Shown: positions 6,225-43,217 of the stretch, piece after piece
Position numbering within the stretch: the first letter of the stretch is position 1
Layout of the letters: each line of letters starts with the position of its first letter
Assembly: GCA_028023455.1 (NCBI GenBank)
Contig: JAQFVV010000006.1
Coordinates: forward strand, 13,206,001-13,270,000
Length of the DNA: 64,000 nt
DNA from: Epiperipatus broadwayi
Lineage: Eukaryota; Animalia; Onychophora
Direction: 5' to 3'
Made by a program: the position numbers and the translations under genes
Notes under the pieces: model-generated
Databases searched by the model: none
What the model was told of the DNA's origin: nothing
What the model saw: only the letters and a program-made list of their open reading frames with translations

Positions 6225-6545
6225 GCTCTTGGAAGGTTATAAGTAAGCAGATGAGAAAATCACATGATACTATGATTGATATTAACTTTTCTAACCAAAA
6301 GATAGACAAGACCTTCAATTGACATAGAACTGAGGATTCTATAATATATGGAAAGTGATCTGGTCTCAGATATGTATGATAATACAAGTGAATTGGATAG
6401 TTTGAACCTTTAGGATATTTTTTAATTTTAAACCATCATCTTAAATAATATAAAGAAATAAAAGATGGCTGCTACAAGCATCACTGAATCATATTCCTCA
6501 CTGATGAAGGCAAAATCAGAGAAAGTGAAATAAGAATATCTGACC
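6225..6545 (+). mobile_element. Strongly decayed family B copy
   Basis: AAAGAAATAAAAGATGGCTGCT and CCTCACTGATGAAGGC match the family B copy at 35110-35202. Confidence 0.5.
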
Positions 6546-6635
6546 AATGCAGAAGATGACACATGACTGGGTCAAGACAATGACCCTTGAGTTCCTAGTT
6601 ATTATTAGTTAAACATATGCAATTTTTTGTCATTA

Positions 6636-7177
6636 TACTATAATGTTTAATATGCCTGCTTAGCACTTTCGAGATTTAGTATTCTAATCTCATACTCATA
6701 GCTTTACTGAATGAAGACTGTTGTAATTTATTGTACACATATGCAAATGTGCTTGAATTTTTAATTAGTTAGTCTATTGTTTGGAGAGAGCAAAGCATGC
6801 CTCTCTTCTATTAATGGCACTGAGATCATTTGCTATGTAAAAGGCTGATTTGACCTTTCTTTTGGCATCACTCTTCTCTTCAGTAATTATTTGGGCAGAA
6901 CTGGGTTCGAATACATGGCCTGTAGCTGCTTGGTGGTCCCAGAAGATTGATATTCCTTCATTTTTATTTTTAATCCTGATGTACGCATACCTGTGCCATT
7001 AATAGAAGAGAGGCATGCTTTGCTCTCTCCAAACAATGGACTAACTAATTAAAAATTCAAGTGCATTTGCATATGTGTACAATAAATTACAACAGTCTTC
7101 ATTCAGTAAAGCTATGAGGATGAGATTGGAATAATAAATCTCGAAAGCGCTAAGCAGACATATTAAACATTATAGTA
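6636..7177 (-). mobile_element. Penelope-like element 3' end (GIY-YIG C-terminus plus HHR-bearing tail) with inverted duplicate of the tail
   Basis: Minus-strand frame EGISIFWDHQAATGHVFEPSSAQIITEEKSDAKRKVKSAFYIANDLSAINRREACFALSKQ resembles the PLE 'H..TGH.F....A.I...E....RK.KE..YI.....INR..G..LS..W'; inverted arms 6636-6820 and 6993-7177. Confidence 0.85.
6658..6703 (-). ncRNA. Non-canonical type-I hammerhead (A3:U8 core)
   Basis: GCT-ATGAGTA-T-GAGATT(AGAATACTA)AATCTC-GAAA-GTGC-TA-AGC; inverted copy at 7111-7155 (+) has ATGAGGA and GAAAGCGCTA. Confidence 0.7.
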
Positions 7178-7782
7178 CAATTACAGCTTCACTAACGCAT
7201 GCGAAAGCATATGTATAATTACAATTTTTATTGGTGAAGAGAAAAACAATTTATTATTAGTTAAAATGTACTGGCCCCAATTTAATCTAAATTGGTTAGA
7301 TAAGCTATAGTGCAATAACTATAAAACAAATATTATATCTGTAATATATTTTACTTGTTTCTTAATCTCTTTTGGATATTTTTAGTTGGGTCAAATTACT
7401 TTCATATGGTTTTAATAAATTTTATCTAGAAATTTTAATAATAATTTACAATAGATGGCTCTGGTATCAGGTAAAGAAAGCTGTTCCTGAAAATTTATAT
7501 TAAAAGTAGGCAAAAGAAAGTCGCATGATATCTATTGATGTAAAATAAATCTTATAGATCATTTTGAATTATTATATACTACTAACTTGAAAGATAGAGA
7601 TATTTTTCAGCTGAAAACTTAATATTTTTTTGGGAATGAATTTTTCTATTATTTTTTGTGGCAGTGGTTTAGTATTTGCACTTTGGTGGGTGCTTCCTAC
7701 CATTAAAATTAATCTGCCTGATAAATATTTGTAACCATTGAAATCTTTCGAGTTTGCAATGCACTTTACAAAACTTATTTGG

Positions 7783-7976: not shown

Positions 7977-8465
7977 ATTATATATTACATGTTGAGCATG
8001 CTTTCAACATTATTTGTCAGATTCAAAGTGTTTAACTATCCCGCAGACCACAATTCGGGCTTTTATAAATTTGCATATTATTCATTCGAATGAACTCATT
8101 TAAATATTTCACTTTTTGATAATAGAATGCTTGCTTCTTTTTTATTTATCAGGTAGGTGTCTTTGGCAACAGCTCATATCTCTTTCACTTCCTGTCATTT
8201 CTCTTGAAATAAACTGCTTTTACTTTGGTCAGATCAAACATATGACACGTTTCACACTCATGTTCAATAAATATTGAGTTATATTGAGAGTTCTTTTTCC
8301 TCTGCTTTAATTGTAGACTGCAGAATAGTTGATTGCTATAAATCTGATAGAGGTCAAAAGCAAGCTCACAGTTGGAAATAAAGTACCTCTTCCTGTTACA
8401 CGTTTAATATGTAGTCTTAAATATTACAATCAGCCCAAGAAAAGTGAAATTAAAGGTTGTTGTTC

Positions 8466-11698: not shown

Positions 11699-11975
11699 CA
11701 TCATCAGATTTTCAATGATGTGGAGGGCTGAAAAGTTGGAGAGTGAAGAAGATTGAAGTCTGTTCATTAATGTATGAAGATTTGCTATTTTAATATAAAC
11801 TGAACACTTATTATATATGTATGTGGGAGATTATCTGAACCAACTGATGAGTGCTGGTTCAGCATGAAATATGGATTTTGGAGATCATTTATCTTATTCA
11901 CAGGTGTGTGGTCATGTGCATTGGTTATATAAGATGGAGAGGGTAGCTGAAGAAAGCTTAAAAGTTCTGTGTTCA
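11699..11975 (+). mobile_element. Family A1 copy with near-intact HHR at 11830-11887
   Basis: CCAA-CTGATGA-GTGCTG(GTT)CAGCAT-GAAA-TATGGAT-T-TTGG, followed by TGGTCATGTG and GTTCAAATC boxes. Confidence 0.85.
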
Positions 11976-25039: not shown

Positions 25040-25670
25040 TCCTTTATTTTATTTAGATGAACACACTTTCAGTGATGAGCACCATACTCATAGCTCCCAT
25101 GTTTCATAGTGTTGTTGCTTTGTTTATAATCCAAATTGATTATTCATATTATGTAAATTAGTCTTGTTTAATTATTCCATCTGTATGATAATCGAATGCT
25201 GCTTTCTCTTATCACATTTTTGTGATTACCTGTTTCTTTTACTTTCCTTCAGATCAATGCATTATATGTATACCAATTTTGTATACCATGGATCAAAGCT
25301 ATAGCCATGTTGCATTGCATGATCCTGGAACATGGACCATATTCTGAGTTGTTTTTACCATACTTATATAAATATTTGTATTGCACTATTCTGTTTGTAA
25401 TATTGGTCTTTGATTGACTAGTTTATGGCTGTGCAATCTAGGCTTTTGCACTGGACCTCAGATACTCTCTGTGGTATTTCTTCCTTTTGTAATCTGTCTT
25501 TGTGTAAAAATGCATTCAATTATCATACAGATGGAATATTTAATTGAACTGATGTACATAATATGAATAATCAAGCTGGACTATAAATAAGGCAGCAACA
25601 CTTGAAAACATGAGAGTTGCGATTATGGCATAAATCACCAAAAATGCTCTCTGCTAAATAAAATAAAGAA
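25040..25670 (-). mobile_element. PLE 3' remnant: GIY-YIG (about 25500 to 25200), HHR-bearing tail, and inverted copy of the tail at the truncation point
   Basis: Minus-strand VQCKSLDCTA..QSKTNITNRIVQYK, FQDHAMQHGYSFD, NVIRESSIR; arms ~25040-25205 and ~25510-25670. Confidence 0.75.
25055..25095 (-). ncRNA. Non-canonical type-I hammerhead (A3:U8 core)
   Basis: AGCT-ATGAGTA-T-GGTG(CTCAT)CACT-GAAA-GTGTG-TTC-ATCT. Confidence 0.65.
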
Positions 25671-26049: not shown

Positions 26050-26950
26050 ATTTGTGAATCATCTATATTCAAAATCAAGTTCATTATCTAAATAATAATT
26101 AAGTTTAGTGGAACTTGAAAGTAGTAAAAATAATTATTTAGGAGTCTGCTTTCAAAAATGTTTTCCCATTTAATGGGGTTTATTTAAACTTCTTTGGATT
26201 TAAAAAATTTCAATCTACTAAATTCAAAGTGTCAACTGCATGTCTATAATAATATCTTAGACCAGAGTGATAGATGGAATTTACCTTTTAATCAAAAAGG
26301 TTACTTTGATTGATTATTCCTAATGTTGATAAGTTTGAATTATTAATATCATGTAATTTATGTTTGTGAACTATCTAGCTTTATCCATAATAAAGTTTAT
26401 TATCTAAATATACTTCACATGATGAAGAAATAAAAAAAATTTAACAATAGATACAAATTCGATATGCCATCTAATCTTAAATCTCAGACTGACATGCCTT
26501 ATATTCCTAAAATTGATTCAAAATTAATACCTATCTTAAACGAAGATTTCAATGTTGGTTTTAGAAGTTCCTTGTCACTTAACAGATTGATTAATAATTC
26601 CAAAGACAAGATCATTAATGGTGACAAGGATCAACTTGTATATGACCTAAATTATCAATTTTGTAATGGCAAATATTATGGAGAAACTTGCACAAACTTA
26701 AAACTGAGAGTTACTCCATACTTTCACTTATATAACAGAGCCAAATCTGACAGCACTTACAGCTTAGTATTCATCGACCATGAAAAAATACTGGACATTC
26801 TTTTAAACCTGCCAATACTAGAGTTGTCTACTTTGAAAGCAACAACAAAAAATGTAAAACCAAGAAGACCTGGCATACAATCAACTTCAAAAATGCCATA
26901 AATCTGAAAGCCAATAGCATTCCCCTTAGCAAATTCTGGTCATTTAATTC
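26050..26950 (+). mobile_element. Penelope-like element remnant (RT thumb/linker plus GIY-YIG endonuclease)
   Basis: ORF 26464-26901: MPYIPKID..LNRLINNSKDKI...LVYDLNYQFCNGKYYGETCTNLKLRV, matching 'VY.I.C..C...YIGET.R.L..R'. Confidence 0.8.
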
Positions 26951-29197
26951 AACAGCATAGTTAATTGACTGACTGATTTACACATACTCACACATGCAAA
27001 TATGTAAATTTACTAAAATCAGAGGCCAATTTAATTTACCTGCAAGTGGAAGTGCTGATATGTTTGCTAATTTCACTTCTTTGACACAGATATGCCATAT
27101 CACGCACACGCATGTATAAGATATATTTTAAAATGCACACATTAAAACATTAGCGAAAATAATAAGTAAAACATAAAAAATACAGTGAAGAAATAGATTG
27201 GAAGATACAGAGCAACTAATTGAGTGAGTGCTTTCTGGGTGTGCCTGATGAGAAAAATGATTCGTAACAGATCTCATGCAGGAAAGCACATGCATGAAAT
27301 TTATAAATTCAAATTTATGAATTATTTTTTTATTTATCAAACAATTAATTGTTAAAGCAATATTTGGTGAGCCTGTGGATATAGTAGAGCCACAGTGCTA
27401 AGAAATATCAAGAGGTAATCAAAAAAATAGTCATTCCATATTTCAACTATAAACTGAATTTAATGGACCCATCACATTGTGGCTGATTTTAAAGTAAAAA
27501 TAAAAGTTCAAATTTAAAATATTATTCATAATTTTATTGCCACATGGAATTCAAGGGAATGTAGTAAAGTGTAAGAAAACTAAATATAGATTAATGTTAA
27601 GAAGAAAAATAACTAGGGGCATTTGAAAAATAGAGCCAAAGCCCAACCTCAAATAAGATGGTCTGGTTCAGTGAGCAGACCATCCTTTGATAGATAACTA
27701 AAATAATAATAATTGAATTGTCTATTGTACAGAAGTTCATTAAAAAGTGTGAGCACTGGAAGAGATAGAACGGAGCCACAATCCAAGTATCTTGAGCTCT
27801 CAAAGTTTGCCACCCTATCACTGAGCCAAACCATGCAAGGTGGCAGAGAATTAATGATGATGAATAAATGTAGTAAAGATATGATAAAGAGAAAAAAGGA
27901 ATAATATTCTTTCATGGCTACCTGATATAATAACTTGATATATAACTAACTACCTGATATAATAACTTGATATATAACTAATACTTTTTCAATTATTTTT
28001 AATATTTACTTTTCAAATTCAAACGTCAGTTATTTTTTTAACTGCAATATTACTCAAATGAAAACTGAAATTACACAGTGTTTTTATTCTTAATCTCAAG
28101 CATTATCTTCATTTTCTCAGGTTCATTCAAGAGTAAGGTTTGCAAGCTGACAGACAGACCGAAAGAAATAACAAATGATAAAAAAAAAAAACTGGTCAAC
28201 TAGAAAAAAAAAGGCCCAGCAAAACTTAATCATTTTAATCTTGAGTTAATCTAAAATAGAATTTTTTTAAAAAAGGAAACAAATGAGGTAGAAAATGAAT
28301 CATTTAAAAAACTGAATATATACATAGTGCATATAAAATATTGCAACACATTTCAAACATACTCTATATATATATGAAAGTATTGCTTAACAATTAATAC
28401 AAACACAGTTTTAAAGGAAACCATATTACAGAAATCAATTACAATATTTAAGTGTCCTCTATCACCTTTTAGAAAAATAAAACATATATAATAGTCAAAT
28501 TCTAAATTGTAAACTATGATAATACTGGAGTTACAACGTCAGTTTCAAGAAAATCCCTCCATCAGCTTTGCTAAGGTCTTGCATATATAAATTAACCCTG
28601 TGTCTTGTCATATTTCACAAATTGACTATTATATATAACTAATTTTATTTTCACAAGGATCTAAAAGAAGGAGCTGCTTAAAAACTCTGATTGGTACTAC
28701 AGTAAACATATAATCCCTTTATTTTTTTTTACTTTATAATACACCAGACTTATTTGCTCTTTTTTCATTTCTTTTCTTTAGTTATATTCTTAATCAAATA
28801 AAGATATATATTTTCTGATAGAAATTTGCTATAGTAAGGTATAATGATCTCTGTTGCTATGAACGCTTATAGAATGGCAAATTGTATGGTGAACACTTTT
28901 ATTAAAACGATGTAAAAAAAAAATTTTTTTCATGCATGCCAAATTAATCAAGAGATGAATAATTTGTTATTTTGTACTTTTTAGACATCTATTTACATGT
29001 AAACATTTTTTTTACTTTTTAATTATATTTACATACTATTTAAAAAAGTGGTTAAATCTACAAAAAGGTCTGACAAAAATTATAATTTAATAAGAAGACA
29101 TGAAAATAAATAATACATCCTCTAACAAATGAATTCTAAATTTAATTATCATGTGATTGTCTACTACATAAAAATATTTATGTATTGACTTTTTAAT

Positions 29198-33669: not shown

Positions 33670-34500
33670 TAGATAGCAAATTATTACAATTTATTTGATA
33701 AATGTCAAATGTTTTGCCCTCACAAATTTAACACAAATCATTTAATAAAAGTATATTAATAATTTTATAAGCCATTCATTAGACTATAAATTACTCAATA
33801 GTGAATGATATTTGTATAGTATAATTTTCATTACGCCATTCTCATGCAATGCAAGGACTGGCTTTTATCCATGTTTAACACCTTGTGCAGGGGTATAATC
33901 TTAAATATATGATCAAAAACATGATAAAAATATATGTCCCCCAAGATGCATATTCCATGCTGACCTGTGTTCATCTGTTGGTCCAGATTACAATCTCTTA
34001 CACATATCTTTATCATGGTTCAATATGTATAGATAGGAAATTACTACATTTTAAATAGATAGGAAATCACTAGAGTTTAAAAATCCTTCCCTACCTTGTG
34101 TAAGAGTGGTGTAGTAAAAATTACACTAAGAAATATTATTAATTAAATGGATAATCTCTAGTCTAATGAATGACTAACAAAAATTATTAATATACTTCCA
34201 ACAAGTGGTTTGTGTCACAGTTGTGAGGGCAGTAAGTTTGACACTTACAAATTAAACTGCAATAATTCCCTATCTATATATACTGAACAATAATAATATT
34301 TGTAAGAAAGTGTGATCTGGGCCAACTGATGAATGCTGATTTAGCATGAAATGTACATCTTGGGTATCATACATCTTTTACATGTCTTTGATCACAAGTT
34401 TATGATTACACTCCTCTACAAGGTATTAAAAGTGAGAAGAACCAGTCTCTACCTTGCATGAGAATCATGTAGTAAAAATTACACAAAAGAAATATTAACA
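33670..34500. mobile_element. Family A2 HHR repeat (~357-bp unit): inverted unit followed by tandem units
   Basis: CCTTG..GTAGTAAAAATTACAC at ~34095 and ~34452; complement at 33670-34040; HHR motifs at 33941-33981 (-, decayed) and 34312-34370 (+). Confidence 0.85.
34312..34370 (+). ncRNA. Intact type-I hammerhead ribozyme (family A)
   Basis: CCAA-CTGATGA-ATGCT(GATTT)AGCAT-GAAA-TGTACAT-C/TTGG; palindromic stem III ATGTACAT; predicted cut after 34359; distal stem I TGAT/ATCA. Confidence 0.9.
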
Positions 34501-40229: not shown

Positions 40230-40900
40230 TTAATTTGCTTTTTCAGTACTTATCATTGATAATTCTAAAATTTCATTTTTCAAAAATTTTACTCCTTTAA
40301 TTATCCAGTTTTGATAATATCGATTTAAATTGCCACAATTTGATTTATAAATGTCGAATTTCCTGCACTCTCGGTTTGTCCCCATCCACTTTAAATAAAA
40401 TATGCTGGATTCATATGGGATCCGCCTTCACATTTCACCATTGGTAAATAGGTTGATCGATAATTCCAAAGACAAACTTTTCTATCAAACATACTCCACA
40501 CTGTTTACAGGATTGCATGCACTCAAACCAGCTGCGATGCGATCTGTTTTGGAGAATCCCGCGCCAGCCTAGCAATAAAATTCTCTCAATATTAATACCT
40601 TTACAGAAGAGATGAATGAAATCTAGACCAAAAATTCATATTTCTGGAATATCAAAACAATCTTGACTATACATTTGAACCTACATCAGCCAGTATGCAT
40701 CGAGAGAAATCATTCCAAGCGCAAAATTAAAAAAAAACACGACACATTGCTAATAATCCTAACTCTCTCCCTCTCAAAAAAAGTGGCCAGTTTAATTCAT
40801 GCAAATTTACATCATAATTATACTTATCATCCTCCTTTCCACCAGTCATTTCTATGAATATGATATCTGACCAAGATATTAAAAGCGGCTTAGCATACGA
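40230..40900 (+). mobile_element. Penelope-like element remnant (GIY-YIG) ending in an HHR variant
   Basis: VNRLIDNSKDKL (cf. 26464 ORF), VYRIACTQTSCDAICFGESRASL, IERNHSKRKIK. Confidence 0.75.
40851..40894 (+). ncRNA. Decayed non-canonical hammerhead (A3:U8 core)
   Basis: TCT-ATGAATA-T-GATATCT(GACCA)AGATATT-AAAA-GCGGC-TT-AGC: 7-bp stem II, G12 mutated to A. Confidence 0.6.
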
Positions 40901-41619
40901 CTATAACAAACATTGAATCTTAAGCTTTTCTTATAATTTAACGGAATTACAATTTATCTAAGAAAACTTAACAACAAATGCATAATTTTTTAATTATTCA
41001 CAAAGAAAAGAGTATGATTGAATCATTTTCGTATTTGTTTTTTCTAATATATATATTGCAAGGGAACTAAATGTAATTGTTATACTTTTCAAATTCATTC
41101 TTTGTTCTGGTTTATGTAAATATATAATTTTATTTTTATTTAATTTGACTTCTTTTTTTGTTGTTGTTGTTAAAATTATAAAACTTATCTATCAAGTAGA
41201 TTATGGTAAACTCATTTTGGCTACATGCACACATATTAGAACCCTGATATGTAATTTTTTACAGATATTAAGTGGAGAGAGGTAATATATAGCCATGACA
41301 GAGTATTTAATTTAACCAGGTCCAGAACTAGATTTCATAATCACATACATTGAACATGCGCGTATTTTAAGGAAATACATCTTAATATTTACATAGAAGA
41401 TTTTATACACTTATGGAATACTTATACCATAAATATATTTGATGTGAATTTTATAATTTATTATTATTTTGCTAAATTCGAACTCATACATTGTGAATGT
41501 AATAAATATTTAACTAAATTGAATGCAGATTGGATGTAATAAAATGTACCCTTTGTCTCCACGCCATATCAATGTTTGTGTCCATATATATATATATATG
41601 TCATGCATGTATACCTTTC

Positions 41620-42060: not shown

Positions 42061-42689
42061 TGATATCAATTTTCAGTGCAATCTATATTATTTTATTATC
42101 ATTCATAATCTGACTAAAAAAATTTAAACCAATTTCTGCAGGTCATATATTTCAGGCTATCACTCCATTCAACTGCCTTGAGAGGTTACCAAAACCCATA
42201 CCAATATAACAACTTCATTCTTAGTTTAATACCACCACAACAATCTATTTGATAATGTTTGAATAAGAAAGCCTATTTATAATGAACCATGTTCATGGGT
42301 AGTTTGATGAAATCATGTACTGATAGTCTCTGGATTTGAAGATCCATGGATTGAGCAGCCCTATCATTTTCAGCACACAAACTTTTAATAAACAACCAAG
42401 CCATAAACCATTTGATTATGTATATTATGCAATGGCTCATTAACACATACTGCAGAATTACACATCACCATTTTTCAAAATAATCTTGCATAATTAAATC
42501 AATATCTAAATATGTAATAAACAATACAAATACTTTATAATGAATTTCAATTTTTATTACTAAATTTTCCGTTTTAAATAAATTTGGGTATAACTTTTTT
42601 GAGAACATAAACAAAAAAGCTTTAATTCTAGCACGGGTGCGACGCAACTGTTCCCAAAAGCTATAAAGTGTTAATATAAAATAGATAAT

Positions 42690-43002: not shown

Positions 43003-43217
43003 TAAAATAGATAACTAAAACAAACGAGCTGAGCGCTTTCAAAGGATCTTGCCTTCATAATCATAGCTTGCTACTAGTTTAATTATATGCAAATATGCTA
43101 ATTCCATTTCTTCGATAAAGCATATTTGCATATCATTAAACGTATTAGCAAGCTATGATTATGAAGGCAAGATCCTTTGAAAGCGCTCAGCTCGTTTGTT
43201 TTTAGTTATCTATTTTA
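43003..43217. ncRNA. 215-bp near-perfect hairpin made of two opposed intact A3:U8 hammerhead variants (43027-43068 minus, 43151-43192 plus)
   Basis: AGCT-ATGATTA-T-GAAGG(CAAGAT)CCTTT-GAAA-GCGC-TC/AGCT; arms 43003-43099 and 43119-43217; 19-nt loop. Confidence 0.8.

Follow-up and report, generated by a model that had tools for sequence, protein, structure and literature searches.

A hammerhead-type motif with A3-U8 in place of C3-G8 at the decayed 3′ ends of a probable Penelope-like element family in Epiperipatus broadwayi

Introduction

The C3-G8 pair of the hammerhead ribozyme (HHR) positions the residue thought to be the general acid, and the minimal hammerheads of metazoan Penelope-like elements (PLEs) were reportedly treated by Lunse, Weinberg and Breaker in 2017. 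The closest described systems are the PLE minimal hammerheads (PLE min-HHRs) of Cervera & de la Pena 2014 (PMC4209133). These motifs combine a short helix I with a helix II of ~5–8 bp that carries many compensatory changes and opens with G10.1-C11.1, and the metazoan consensus has an unpaired base separating position 9 from 10.1. Their minimal, palindromic helix III implies cleavage as a dimer, activity in vitro is low, and dual motifs lying 100–700 bp apart on opposite strands are frequent. Integration of PLEs leaves a recognizable signature, namely inverted, 5′-truncated twin copies with a tail of 30–40 bp at one end (PMC8557442, PMC11167929).

Natural variation of the 3-8 pair is rare, U3-A8 being the only form in the literature searched in full text. 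PMC4209133 describes U3-A8 covariation in ~1,300 motifs of the Cercyon PLEs of Schistosoma mansoni, and several natural examples were given by Perreault et al. 2011 (PMC3088659). Here, we analyse a 64,000-nucleotide stretch of an Epiperipatus broadwayi contig (the window), in which a repeat family carries a hammerhead-like motif with A at position 3 and U at position 8. We consider it very probable that these loci are dead PLE 3′ ends bearing a PLE-type minimal hammerhead with A3-U8, catalysis by the master elements being putative.

Copies and core of the motif

The exact pattern GCTATGANNATG-N(6-34)-GAAAG matches the window five times, where shuffles lead one to expect 0.01. All six copies listed in a first-pass annotation of this DNA were recovered, five of them as exact matches and the sixth in decayed form, and a covariance model built from the copies (R1), run over the whole window with filters off, revealed no clear copy beyond these six. 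A seventh, heavily decayed motif was recognized as the mirror arm of the copy at 25091. The copies and their weaker relatives are as follows.

43152-43192 (+): A3-U8 minimal hammerhead motif; exact pattern match at 43152-43183; R1 57.6 bits, E 1.5e-11; helix I 5′ strand GCU 43152-43154; A3 43155; U8 43160; A9 43161; unpaired U 43162; helix II 43163-43167/43174-43178; G12-A14 43179-43181; A15.1 43182; GCGC 43183-43186; U16.1 43187; C17 43188; helix I 3′ strand AGC 43189-43191
43027-43067 (-): mirror of the preceding motif, found by pattern and R1; exact pattern match at 43036-43067; A3 at 43064, C17 at 43031
7111-7155 (+): motif with G at position 8 (7119); exact pattern match at 7111-7147; predicted cleavage after A7152
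6658-6702 (-): motif with A3-U8 core AUGAGUA-U; exact pattern match at 6666-6702; helix III AGUGCU
25050-25104 (-): motif with core AUGAGUA-U and helix II GGUG/CACU; exact pattern match at 25066-25094; helix III and the 3′ side of helix I decayed
40842-40905 (+): solo, decayed sixth motif with core AUGAAUA-U; G12 changed to A, extra G in helix III
~25590-25660 (+): seventh, heavily decayed motif
7980-8039 (-): borderline decayed relative with core UUGAAUC-U and palindrome GCAUGC; R1 E 0.19

Position 3 is A in all copies, and position 8 is U in five of the six as well as in the family majority; the intact copies retain U4, G5, A6, A9, G12, A13 and A14. The canonical boxes C3-U4-G5-A6-N7-G8-A9 are not fully matched, the differences falling at positions 3 and 8, which nevertheless stay Watson-Crick compatible. 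No register of the A3-U8 core gives a canonical CUGANGA reading. Searches for CUGANGA miss this lineage, as had been anticipated.

The unpaired U that follows A9 occurs in all six copies and cannot pair. It had been singled out as an extra, inserted U; its presence stands, but it is not new, since an unpaired nucleotide at this place belongs to the published consensus of metazoan PLE min-HHRs (PMC4209133). Helix I is the 3-bp GCU/AGC, which the 43155 copy lengthens to 4+3 bp. The three best copies and most of the family read A-GCGC-U in helix III, and the cleavage triplets are CUC or CUA, which bears out the palindromic stem III and NUH triplet noted earlier. By direct indexing of the sequence, the predicted cleavage site lies after C43188, with its mirror at 43031.

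Two core irregularities had also been pointed out. The G12 change in the 40851(+) copy is confirmed, position 12 reading A. Position 8 of the 7114 copy does carry G (7119), but this change is private: T stands there in the mirror arm and in nearly all paralogous contigs. The motif-strand T at 6665 is private as well; most paralogs have C there, with which the GCGC palindrome is restored. Read by majority, positions 7119 and 6665 thus give A3, U8 and A-GCGC-U as the family state.

Helix II covariation and predicted folds

The stem II strands said to differ between copies and yet to pair (GAAGG/CCTTT, GAGATT/AATCTC, GGTG/CACT and GATATCT/AGATATT) were found as described, and the covariation holds. 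When five sequences were aligned under an imposed hammerhead structure, both sides proved to have changed in five of six helix II pairs, and 96% of helix II cells are paired, against 22–41% when the partners are slid by 1–3 columns. The helix spans 4–7 bp with an invariant G10.1, whose partner at 11.1 is C in two and U in three of the five copies. Read from the opposite strand, the G·U pairs of helix II would turn into A·C mismatches, so that only the sense RNA can form this helix.

Chance matches to the sequence pattern of the motif in metagenome contigs served as an empirical null for helix II, and none of the 52 had a helix II of at least 4 bp. A viral scan with the same pattern gave five matching loci. 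Within the window, a descriptor that accepts any base at positions 3 and 8 returned 10 matches against 2.5 expected from shuffles, and five against 0.35 when a palindromic loop III was also required. Matches of the any-base descriptor included three with C-G cores, three with A-U cores and the A-G copy with its private change.

Folding of two RNAs together with RNAcofold favoured dimers over monomers. For the 7114 copy, the minimum-energy dimer was predicted at -23.1 kcal/mol against -15.8 kcal/mol for two monomers, and for the 43155 copy at -22.1 against -15.0 kcal/mol. Both predicted dimers are classic double hammerheads, in which the AGCGCU segments pair mutually and helix I forms in trans.

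The locus 43003-43217, which contains the 43152 motif and its mirror, is a near-perfect foldback with two arms of ~98 nt that are 96–100% complementary around a centre of 19 nt. Each arm bears one motif, pointing outward.

43003-43100 (-): left arm of a head-to-head twin insertion, PLE 3′-end fragment, delimited by inverted repeats I1, I2 and I5
43119-43217 (+): right arm of the same insertion, PLE 3′-end fragment, delimited by inverted repeats and fold

As RNA, this locus is predicted to form a hairpin of ~100 bp (-148.6 kcal/mol, z -27), and a transcript running across it would fold as a long double-stranded hairpin and not as a ribozyme. A 21-nt copy (90%) of its outer terminus lies ~320 nt to the left, at 42668-42688 in left-arm orientation, and may be a fragment of another insertion.

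Insertion context of the repeat family

The loci had been described as independent. This proved wrong: they are separate insertions of one homologous family, all sharing the ATTTGCATAT box. When the copies are aligned with their flanks, this box lies 30–55 nt upstream of the motif and is accompanied by scattered identities, which identifies the loci as diverged paralogs and not as independent origins. The box could be a promoter element of the pLTR or a protein-binding site.

43124-43133 (+): ATTTGCATAT octamer-like box, invariant columns of alignment A1

The box is found again at 7065-7074, and throughout the family it occupies the equivalent position, after the ORF stop and ahead of the hammerhead.

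Copy number is very high: when contigs of public runs were mapped onto 6400-7400, 3819 DNA contigs from a single run aligned to the element. Repeat depth is limited to ~6604-7283, which fits the bounds of the most complete insertion in the following list. Many paralogous contigs break at 7206/7207, suggesting that the usual 3′ end of the family lies there.

6614-7250: complete PLE twin insertion with arms 6628-6820 and 6993-7185, target-site duplication (TSD) and tail
6777-6998 (-): 74-codon remnant, probable C-terminus of a PLE endonuclease, from weak tblastn matches, synteny and embedding similarity
40638-40769 (+): endonuclease-like peptide upstream of the 40851 motif, weak tblastn match
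Upstream of the 25091 motif (-): endonuclease-like peptide, weak tblastn match
8188-8277 (-): endonuclease-like peptide upstream of the 8039 motif, weak tblastn match
6992-7036: endonuclease-like peptide in the mirror arm, upstream of the 7114 motif, weak tblastn match
26790-26933 (+): related peptide, weak tblastn match, in a different frame from the ORF that it continues, which contains a YYGET GIY-YIG-like motif

At three loci the copies form inverted head-to-head pairs whose motifs point their 3′ ends outward. Besides 43003-43217, these are the pair 6628-6820/6993-7185, which is 95% complementary, and the pair 25003-25199/25512-25702, which is 76–94% complementary and represents an old twin insertion holding the motif at 25050-25104. 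In this old twin (25040-25670) the arms are 76% alike, and one arm is without the core. The insertion at 6614-7250 is flanked by a 15-bp TSD, TTATTATTAGTTAAA (6599-6613 and 7251-7265). Both of its arms end at the same GCATATG, and only the right arm continues for a further 37 nt (7214-7250) before the TSD. A search for TSDs at the 43003, 25040 and 40851 loci gave nothing convincing.

The spacer of 6614-7250 belongs to the minus-strand copy and encodes the end of the 74-codon ORF. The stop of this ORF (6774-6776) precedes A3 (6699) by 74 nt and the first base of the motif (6702) by ~70 nt. With the 74-aa peptide as query, tblastn against the window gave weak but co-oriented relatives in five places, and probable endonuclease C-terminus remnants stand ~70–180 nt upstream of four motifs. 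In the ESM Atlas, the 74-aa peptide and that of 26790-26933 lie nearest to eukaryotic clusters with GIY-YIG, HTH_animal and RVT_1 domains. A Pfam search with nine ORFs and the 74-aa remnant gave no match, a word-indexed protein search with the remnant yielded no candidate homologues, and a HMMER search with it against 1.84 billion representatives did not confirm GIY-YIG, all of its matches being giant proteins with plakin repeats. On the basis of weak tblastn matches, synteny and embedding similarity, a link of the ORF remnants in the window to the endonuclease is likely. No intact PLE ORF was found in the window, which is ~30% GC, AT-rich, repeat-rich and almost without long ORFs, a composition typical of eukaryotic intergenic DNA.

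Matches of 6777-6998(-) to plakin/plectin repeats (residues 14-51, ...DHQAATGHVFEP...) were rejected as spurious, arising from a chance match on ‘QAATGH..P’. Their E-values, down to 5e-65, accumulate through multiple repeats in giant proteins and constitute a trap for automated annotation.

Further probable PLE remnants were observed at two places. The stretch 26464-26933(+) is a probable remnant of a PLE endonuclease in which the YYGET GIY-YIG-like ORF is followed by a frameshift and then by a TGHSFKP... C-terminus; the octamer box lies downstream at ~26993-27010, followed only by a badly decayed hammerhead-like stretch. The stretch 7980-8277(-) is a decayed PLE 3′ end of the same layout, with endonuclease-like peptide, octamer box and motif. 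The copies in the window are dead remnants that decay neutrally, with no evident function of their own.

Comparison with described hammerheads

Set against the PLE min-HHRs of PMC4209133, the motif agrees in its type I architecture, with a short helix I and a covarying helix II that starts from G10.1, in the unpaired nucleotide between A9 and 10.1, and in a helix III of 1 bp whose loop is palindromic. Pairs on opposite strands, very high copy number and heterogeneity are shared as well, and the location is probably likewise a PLE 3′ region or pLTR. Two features depart from the published class: A3-U8 takes the place of C3-G8, and three of five copies carry U at position 11.1, which makes a G·U pair. 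The architecture, the probable endonuclease remnants in sense upstream, and the twins, TSD and tail together uphold the earlier assignment to a PLE-lineage minimal hammerhead with A3-U8 for C3-G8.

The motif shares with the U3-A8 variants a Watson-Crick-compatible replacement of C3-G8, and those of Cercyon belong to the same PLE min-HHR class. In contrast to them, the pair is reversed here, with a purine at 3 and a pyrimidine at 8, so that the residue whose 2′-OH is thought to be catalytic is a U and not a purine. As U3-A8 is already published for the class, the novelty is narrower than first claimed. No paper in the literature searched in full text names A3-U8 in any of several spellings, and we provisionally regard it as not previously reported. 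The first-pass annotation was therefore supported in its identification of the motif, whereas its claims of novelty and independence were overstated.

Similar requirements for two motifs are known from the double hammerheads of newt satellite RNA and ASBVd (Forster et al. 1988, as cited in PMC4209133 and PMC6765202). There too, helix III of a single motif is unstable and prediction gives an active fold only for two motifs joined through helix III, the arrangement that RNAcofold gives for the present copies. The newt satellite and ASBVd hammerheads differ in having canonical cores and proven cleavage. A further PLE-borne hammerhead is PAc, of Poseidon in Anolis carolinensis (PMC11167929), whose insertions show internal initiation of reverse transcription and carry a genomic ‘tail’ comparable with 7214-7250. 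PAc differs in having C3-G8 and in overlapping the ORF start; it was shown to be protein-assisted, and its C3G/G8C double change gives partial rescue.

The hammerhead families of Rfam (types I, II and III, HH9 and HH10) gave no match to the motif at E up to 10. At the same threshold, they matched none of four canonical-core motifs located elsewhere in the window, including the one at 34326 that served as a control; since this canonical control is missed too, the Rfam negative carries no weight.

Proposed mechanism and alternative readings

On the reading that we favour, most loci are head-to-head twin insertions of 5′-truncated copies, the usual product of PLE integration, and every copy carries the PLE-type minimal hammerhead in sense, downstream of the probable endonuclease ORF. 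Helix I (GCU/AGC) has 3–4 bp and leads into the U-turn box A3-U4-G5-A6-N7-U8-A9, after which comes the unpaired nucleotide that PLE hammerheads usually show; helix II, of 4–7 bp, begins with G10.1 and is followed by G12-A13-A14, by a helix III of 1 bp that the palindrome GCGC closes, and by a CUH triplet. In the mechanism that we propose, two motifs in the RNA of an active master element would pair via AGCGCU into a double hammerhead, either in tandem or on separate RNA molecules, a step for which protein help would probably be required. The role of the C3-G8 tertiary pair would fall to A3-U8, with cleavage of each strand after H17.

Inverted arms that are long and nearly perfect, with a clean 15-bp TSD at one element, would also suit a DNA transposon or MITE with terminal inverted repeats, whose hairpin would be a transposase site acting at the DNA level and not an RNA motif. 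We find this scarcely credible, given that both arms carry the coding remnant and the motif in sense orientation and outward, that the arms are asymmetric, with a spacer derived from one arm only and a one-sided tail, and that the copy at 40851 is solo. The G·U pairs of helix II would moreover be A·C mismatches on the opposite strand, and the layout is the published pattern of PLE insertions (PMC8557442). At 43003-43217, the hairpin could alternatively act as a small-RNA precursor of miRNA- or siRNA-like kind, the resemblance to a hammerhead being irrelevant there. Its ~100-bp near-perfect pairing (z -27) and the scores of Rfam models of long plant miRNA precursors over 43027-43192 point that way, yet these scores (60–74 bits against gathering thresholds of 100–211) are far under threshold and mirror only a long hairpin, which is there because the locus is a twin insertion. 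As a small-RNA function would also leave the conserved core at the other loci unexplained, we judge it improbable.

Self-cleavage of the A3-U8 motif is inferred tentatively, and we rate it a little short of an even chance. Positions 3 and 8 are still Watson-Crick compatible, and subfamilies that differ in flanks and helix II still retain G5, A6, A9, G12, A13, A14 and the U-H triplet, which argues for selection on the hammerhead fold in active masters. Its main rival is a conserved fold that does not cleave: derived from a hammerhead but with its activity lost, A3-U8 marking the loss, such a fold would be kept by the masters for recognition by reverse transcriptase or endonuclease, or for RNA packaging. 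A type III hammerhead put through comprehensive pairwise mutagenesis regained activity with the G3-C8 swap only, and other U-turn doubles had low activity (PMC9901934), which speaks for loss of cleavage. PLE min-HHRs cleave poorly in vitro, those with canonical cores included (PMC4209133). Poseidon mutants with a catalytically dead HHR still insert in vitro, and the PAc ribozyme needs protein (PMC11167929), so that conservation need not mean catalysis; Naiad PLEs, too, thrive without canonical HHRs (PMC8557442). In addition, every insertion in the window still has the sequence 3′ of the cleavage site, indicating that the template RNA was not cut at that motif. Against a fold without cleavage stand the retained letters of the catalytic core and the U-H triplet, which a mere protein-binding hairpin would not need, the Watson-Crick compatibility of positions 3 and 8, and the existence of natural U3-A8, with 3-8 covarying ribozymes reported active in vitro (PMC3088659). 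On balance, we regard loss of cleavage as rather unlikely.

Implications

A PLE lineage of very high copy number, with A3-U8 fixed, the other core letters kept and helix II covarying, offers a clean natural test of two questions: how free the identity of the 3-8 pair is in a dimeric, protein-assisted PLE setting, and whether hammerhead catalysis matters for Penelope retrotransposition. If the fold proved not to cleave and to be kept for a non-catalytic role, it would show a PLE hammerhead selected as a structure and not as a ribozyme. As CUGANGA descriptors and Rfam models both miss the A3-U8 lineage, censuses of PLE hammerheads are incomplete.

Other hammerhead motifs in the window

Minimal hammerheads with a canonical core (CUGANGA), belonging to other families, were observed at four places.

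11844-11883 (+): canonical-core minimal hammerhead
34326-34365 (+): canonical-core minimal hammerhead, the control in the Rfam search
32543-32509 (-): canonical-core minimal hammerhead
15549-15515 (-): canonical-core minimal hammerhead

In these four motifs the helix III loop is palindromic (UGUACA, CUAG) and A9 is not followed by an unpaired nucleotide, and the copy at 15549-15515(-) has U at position 3.
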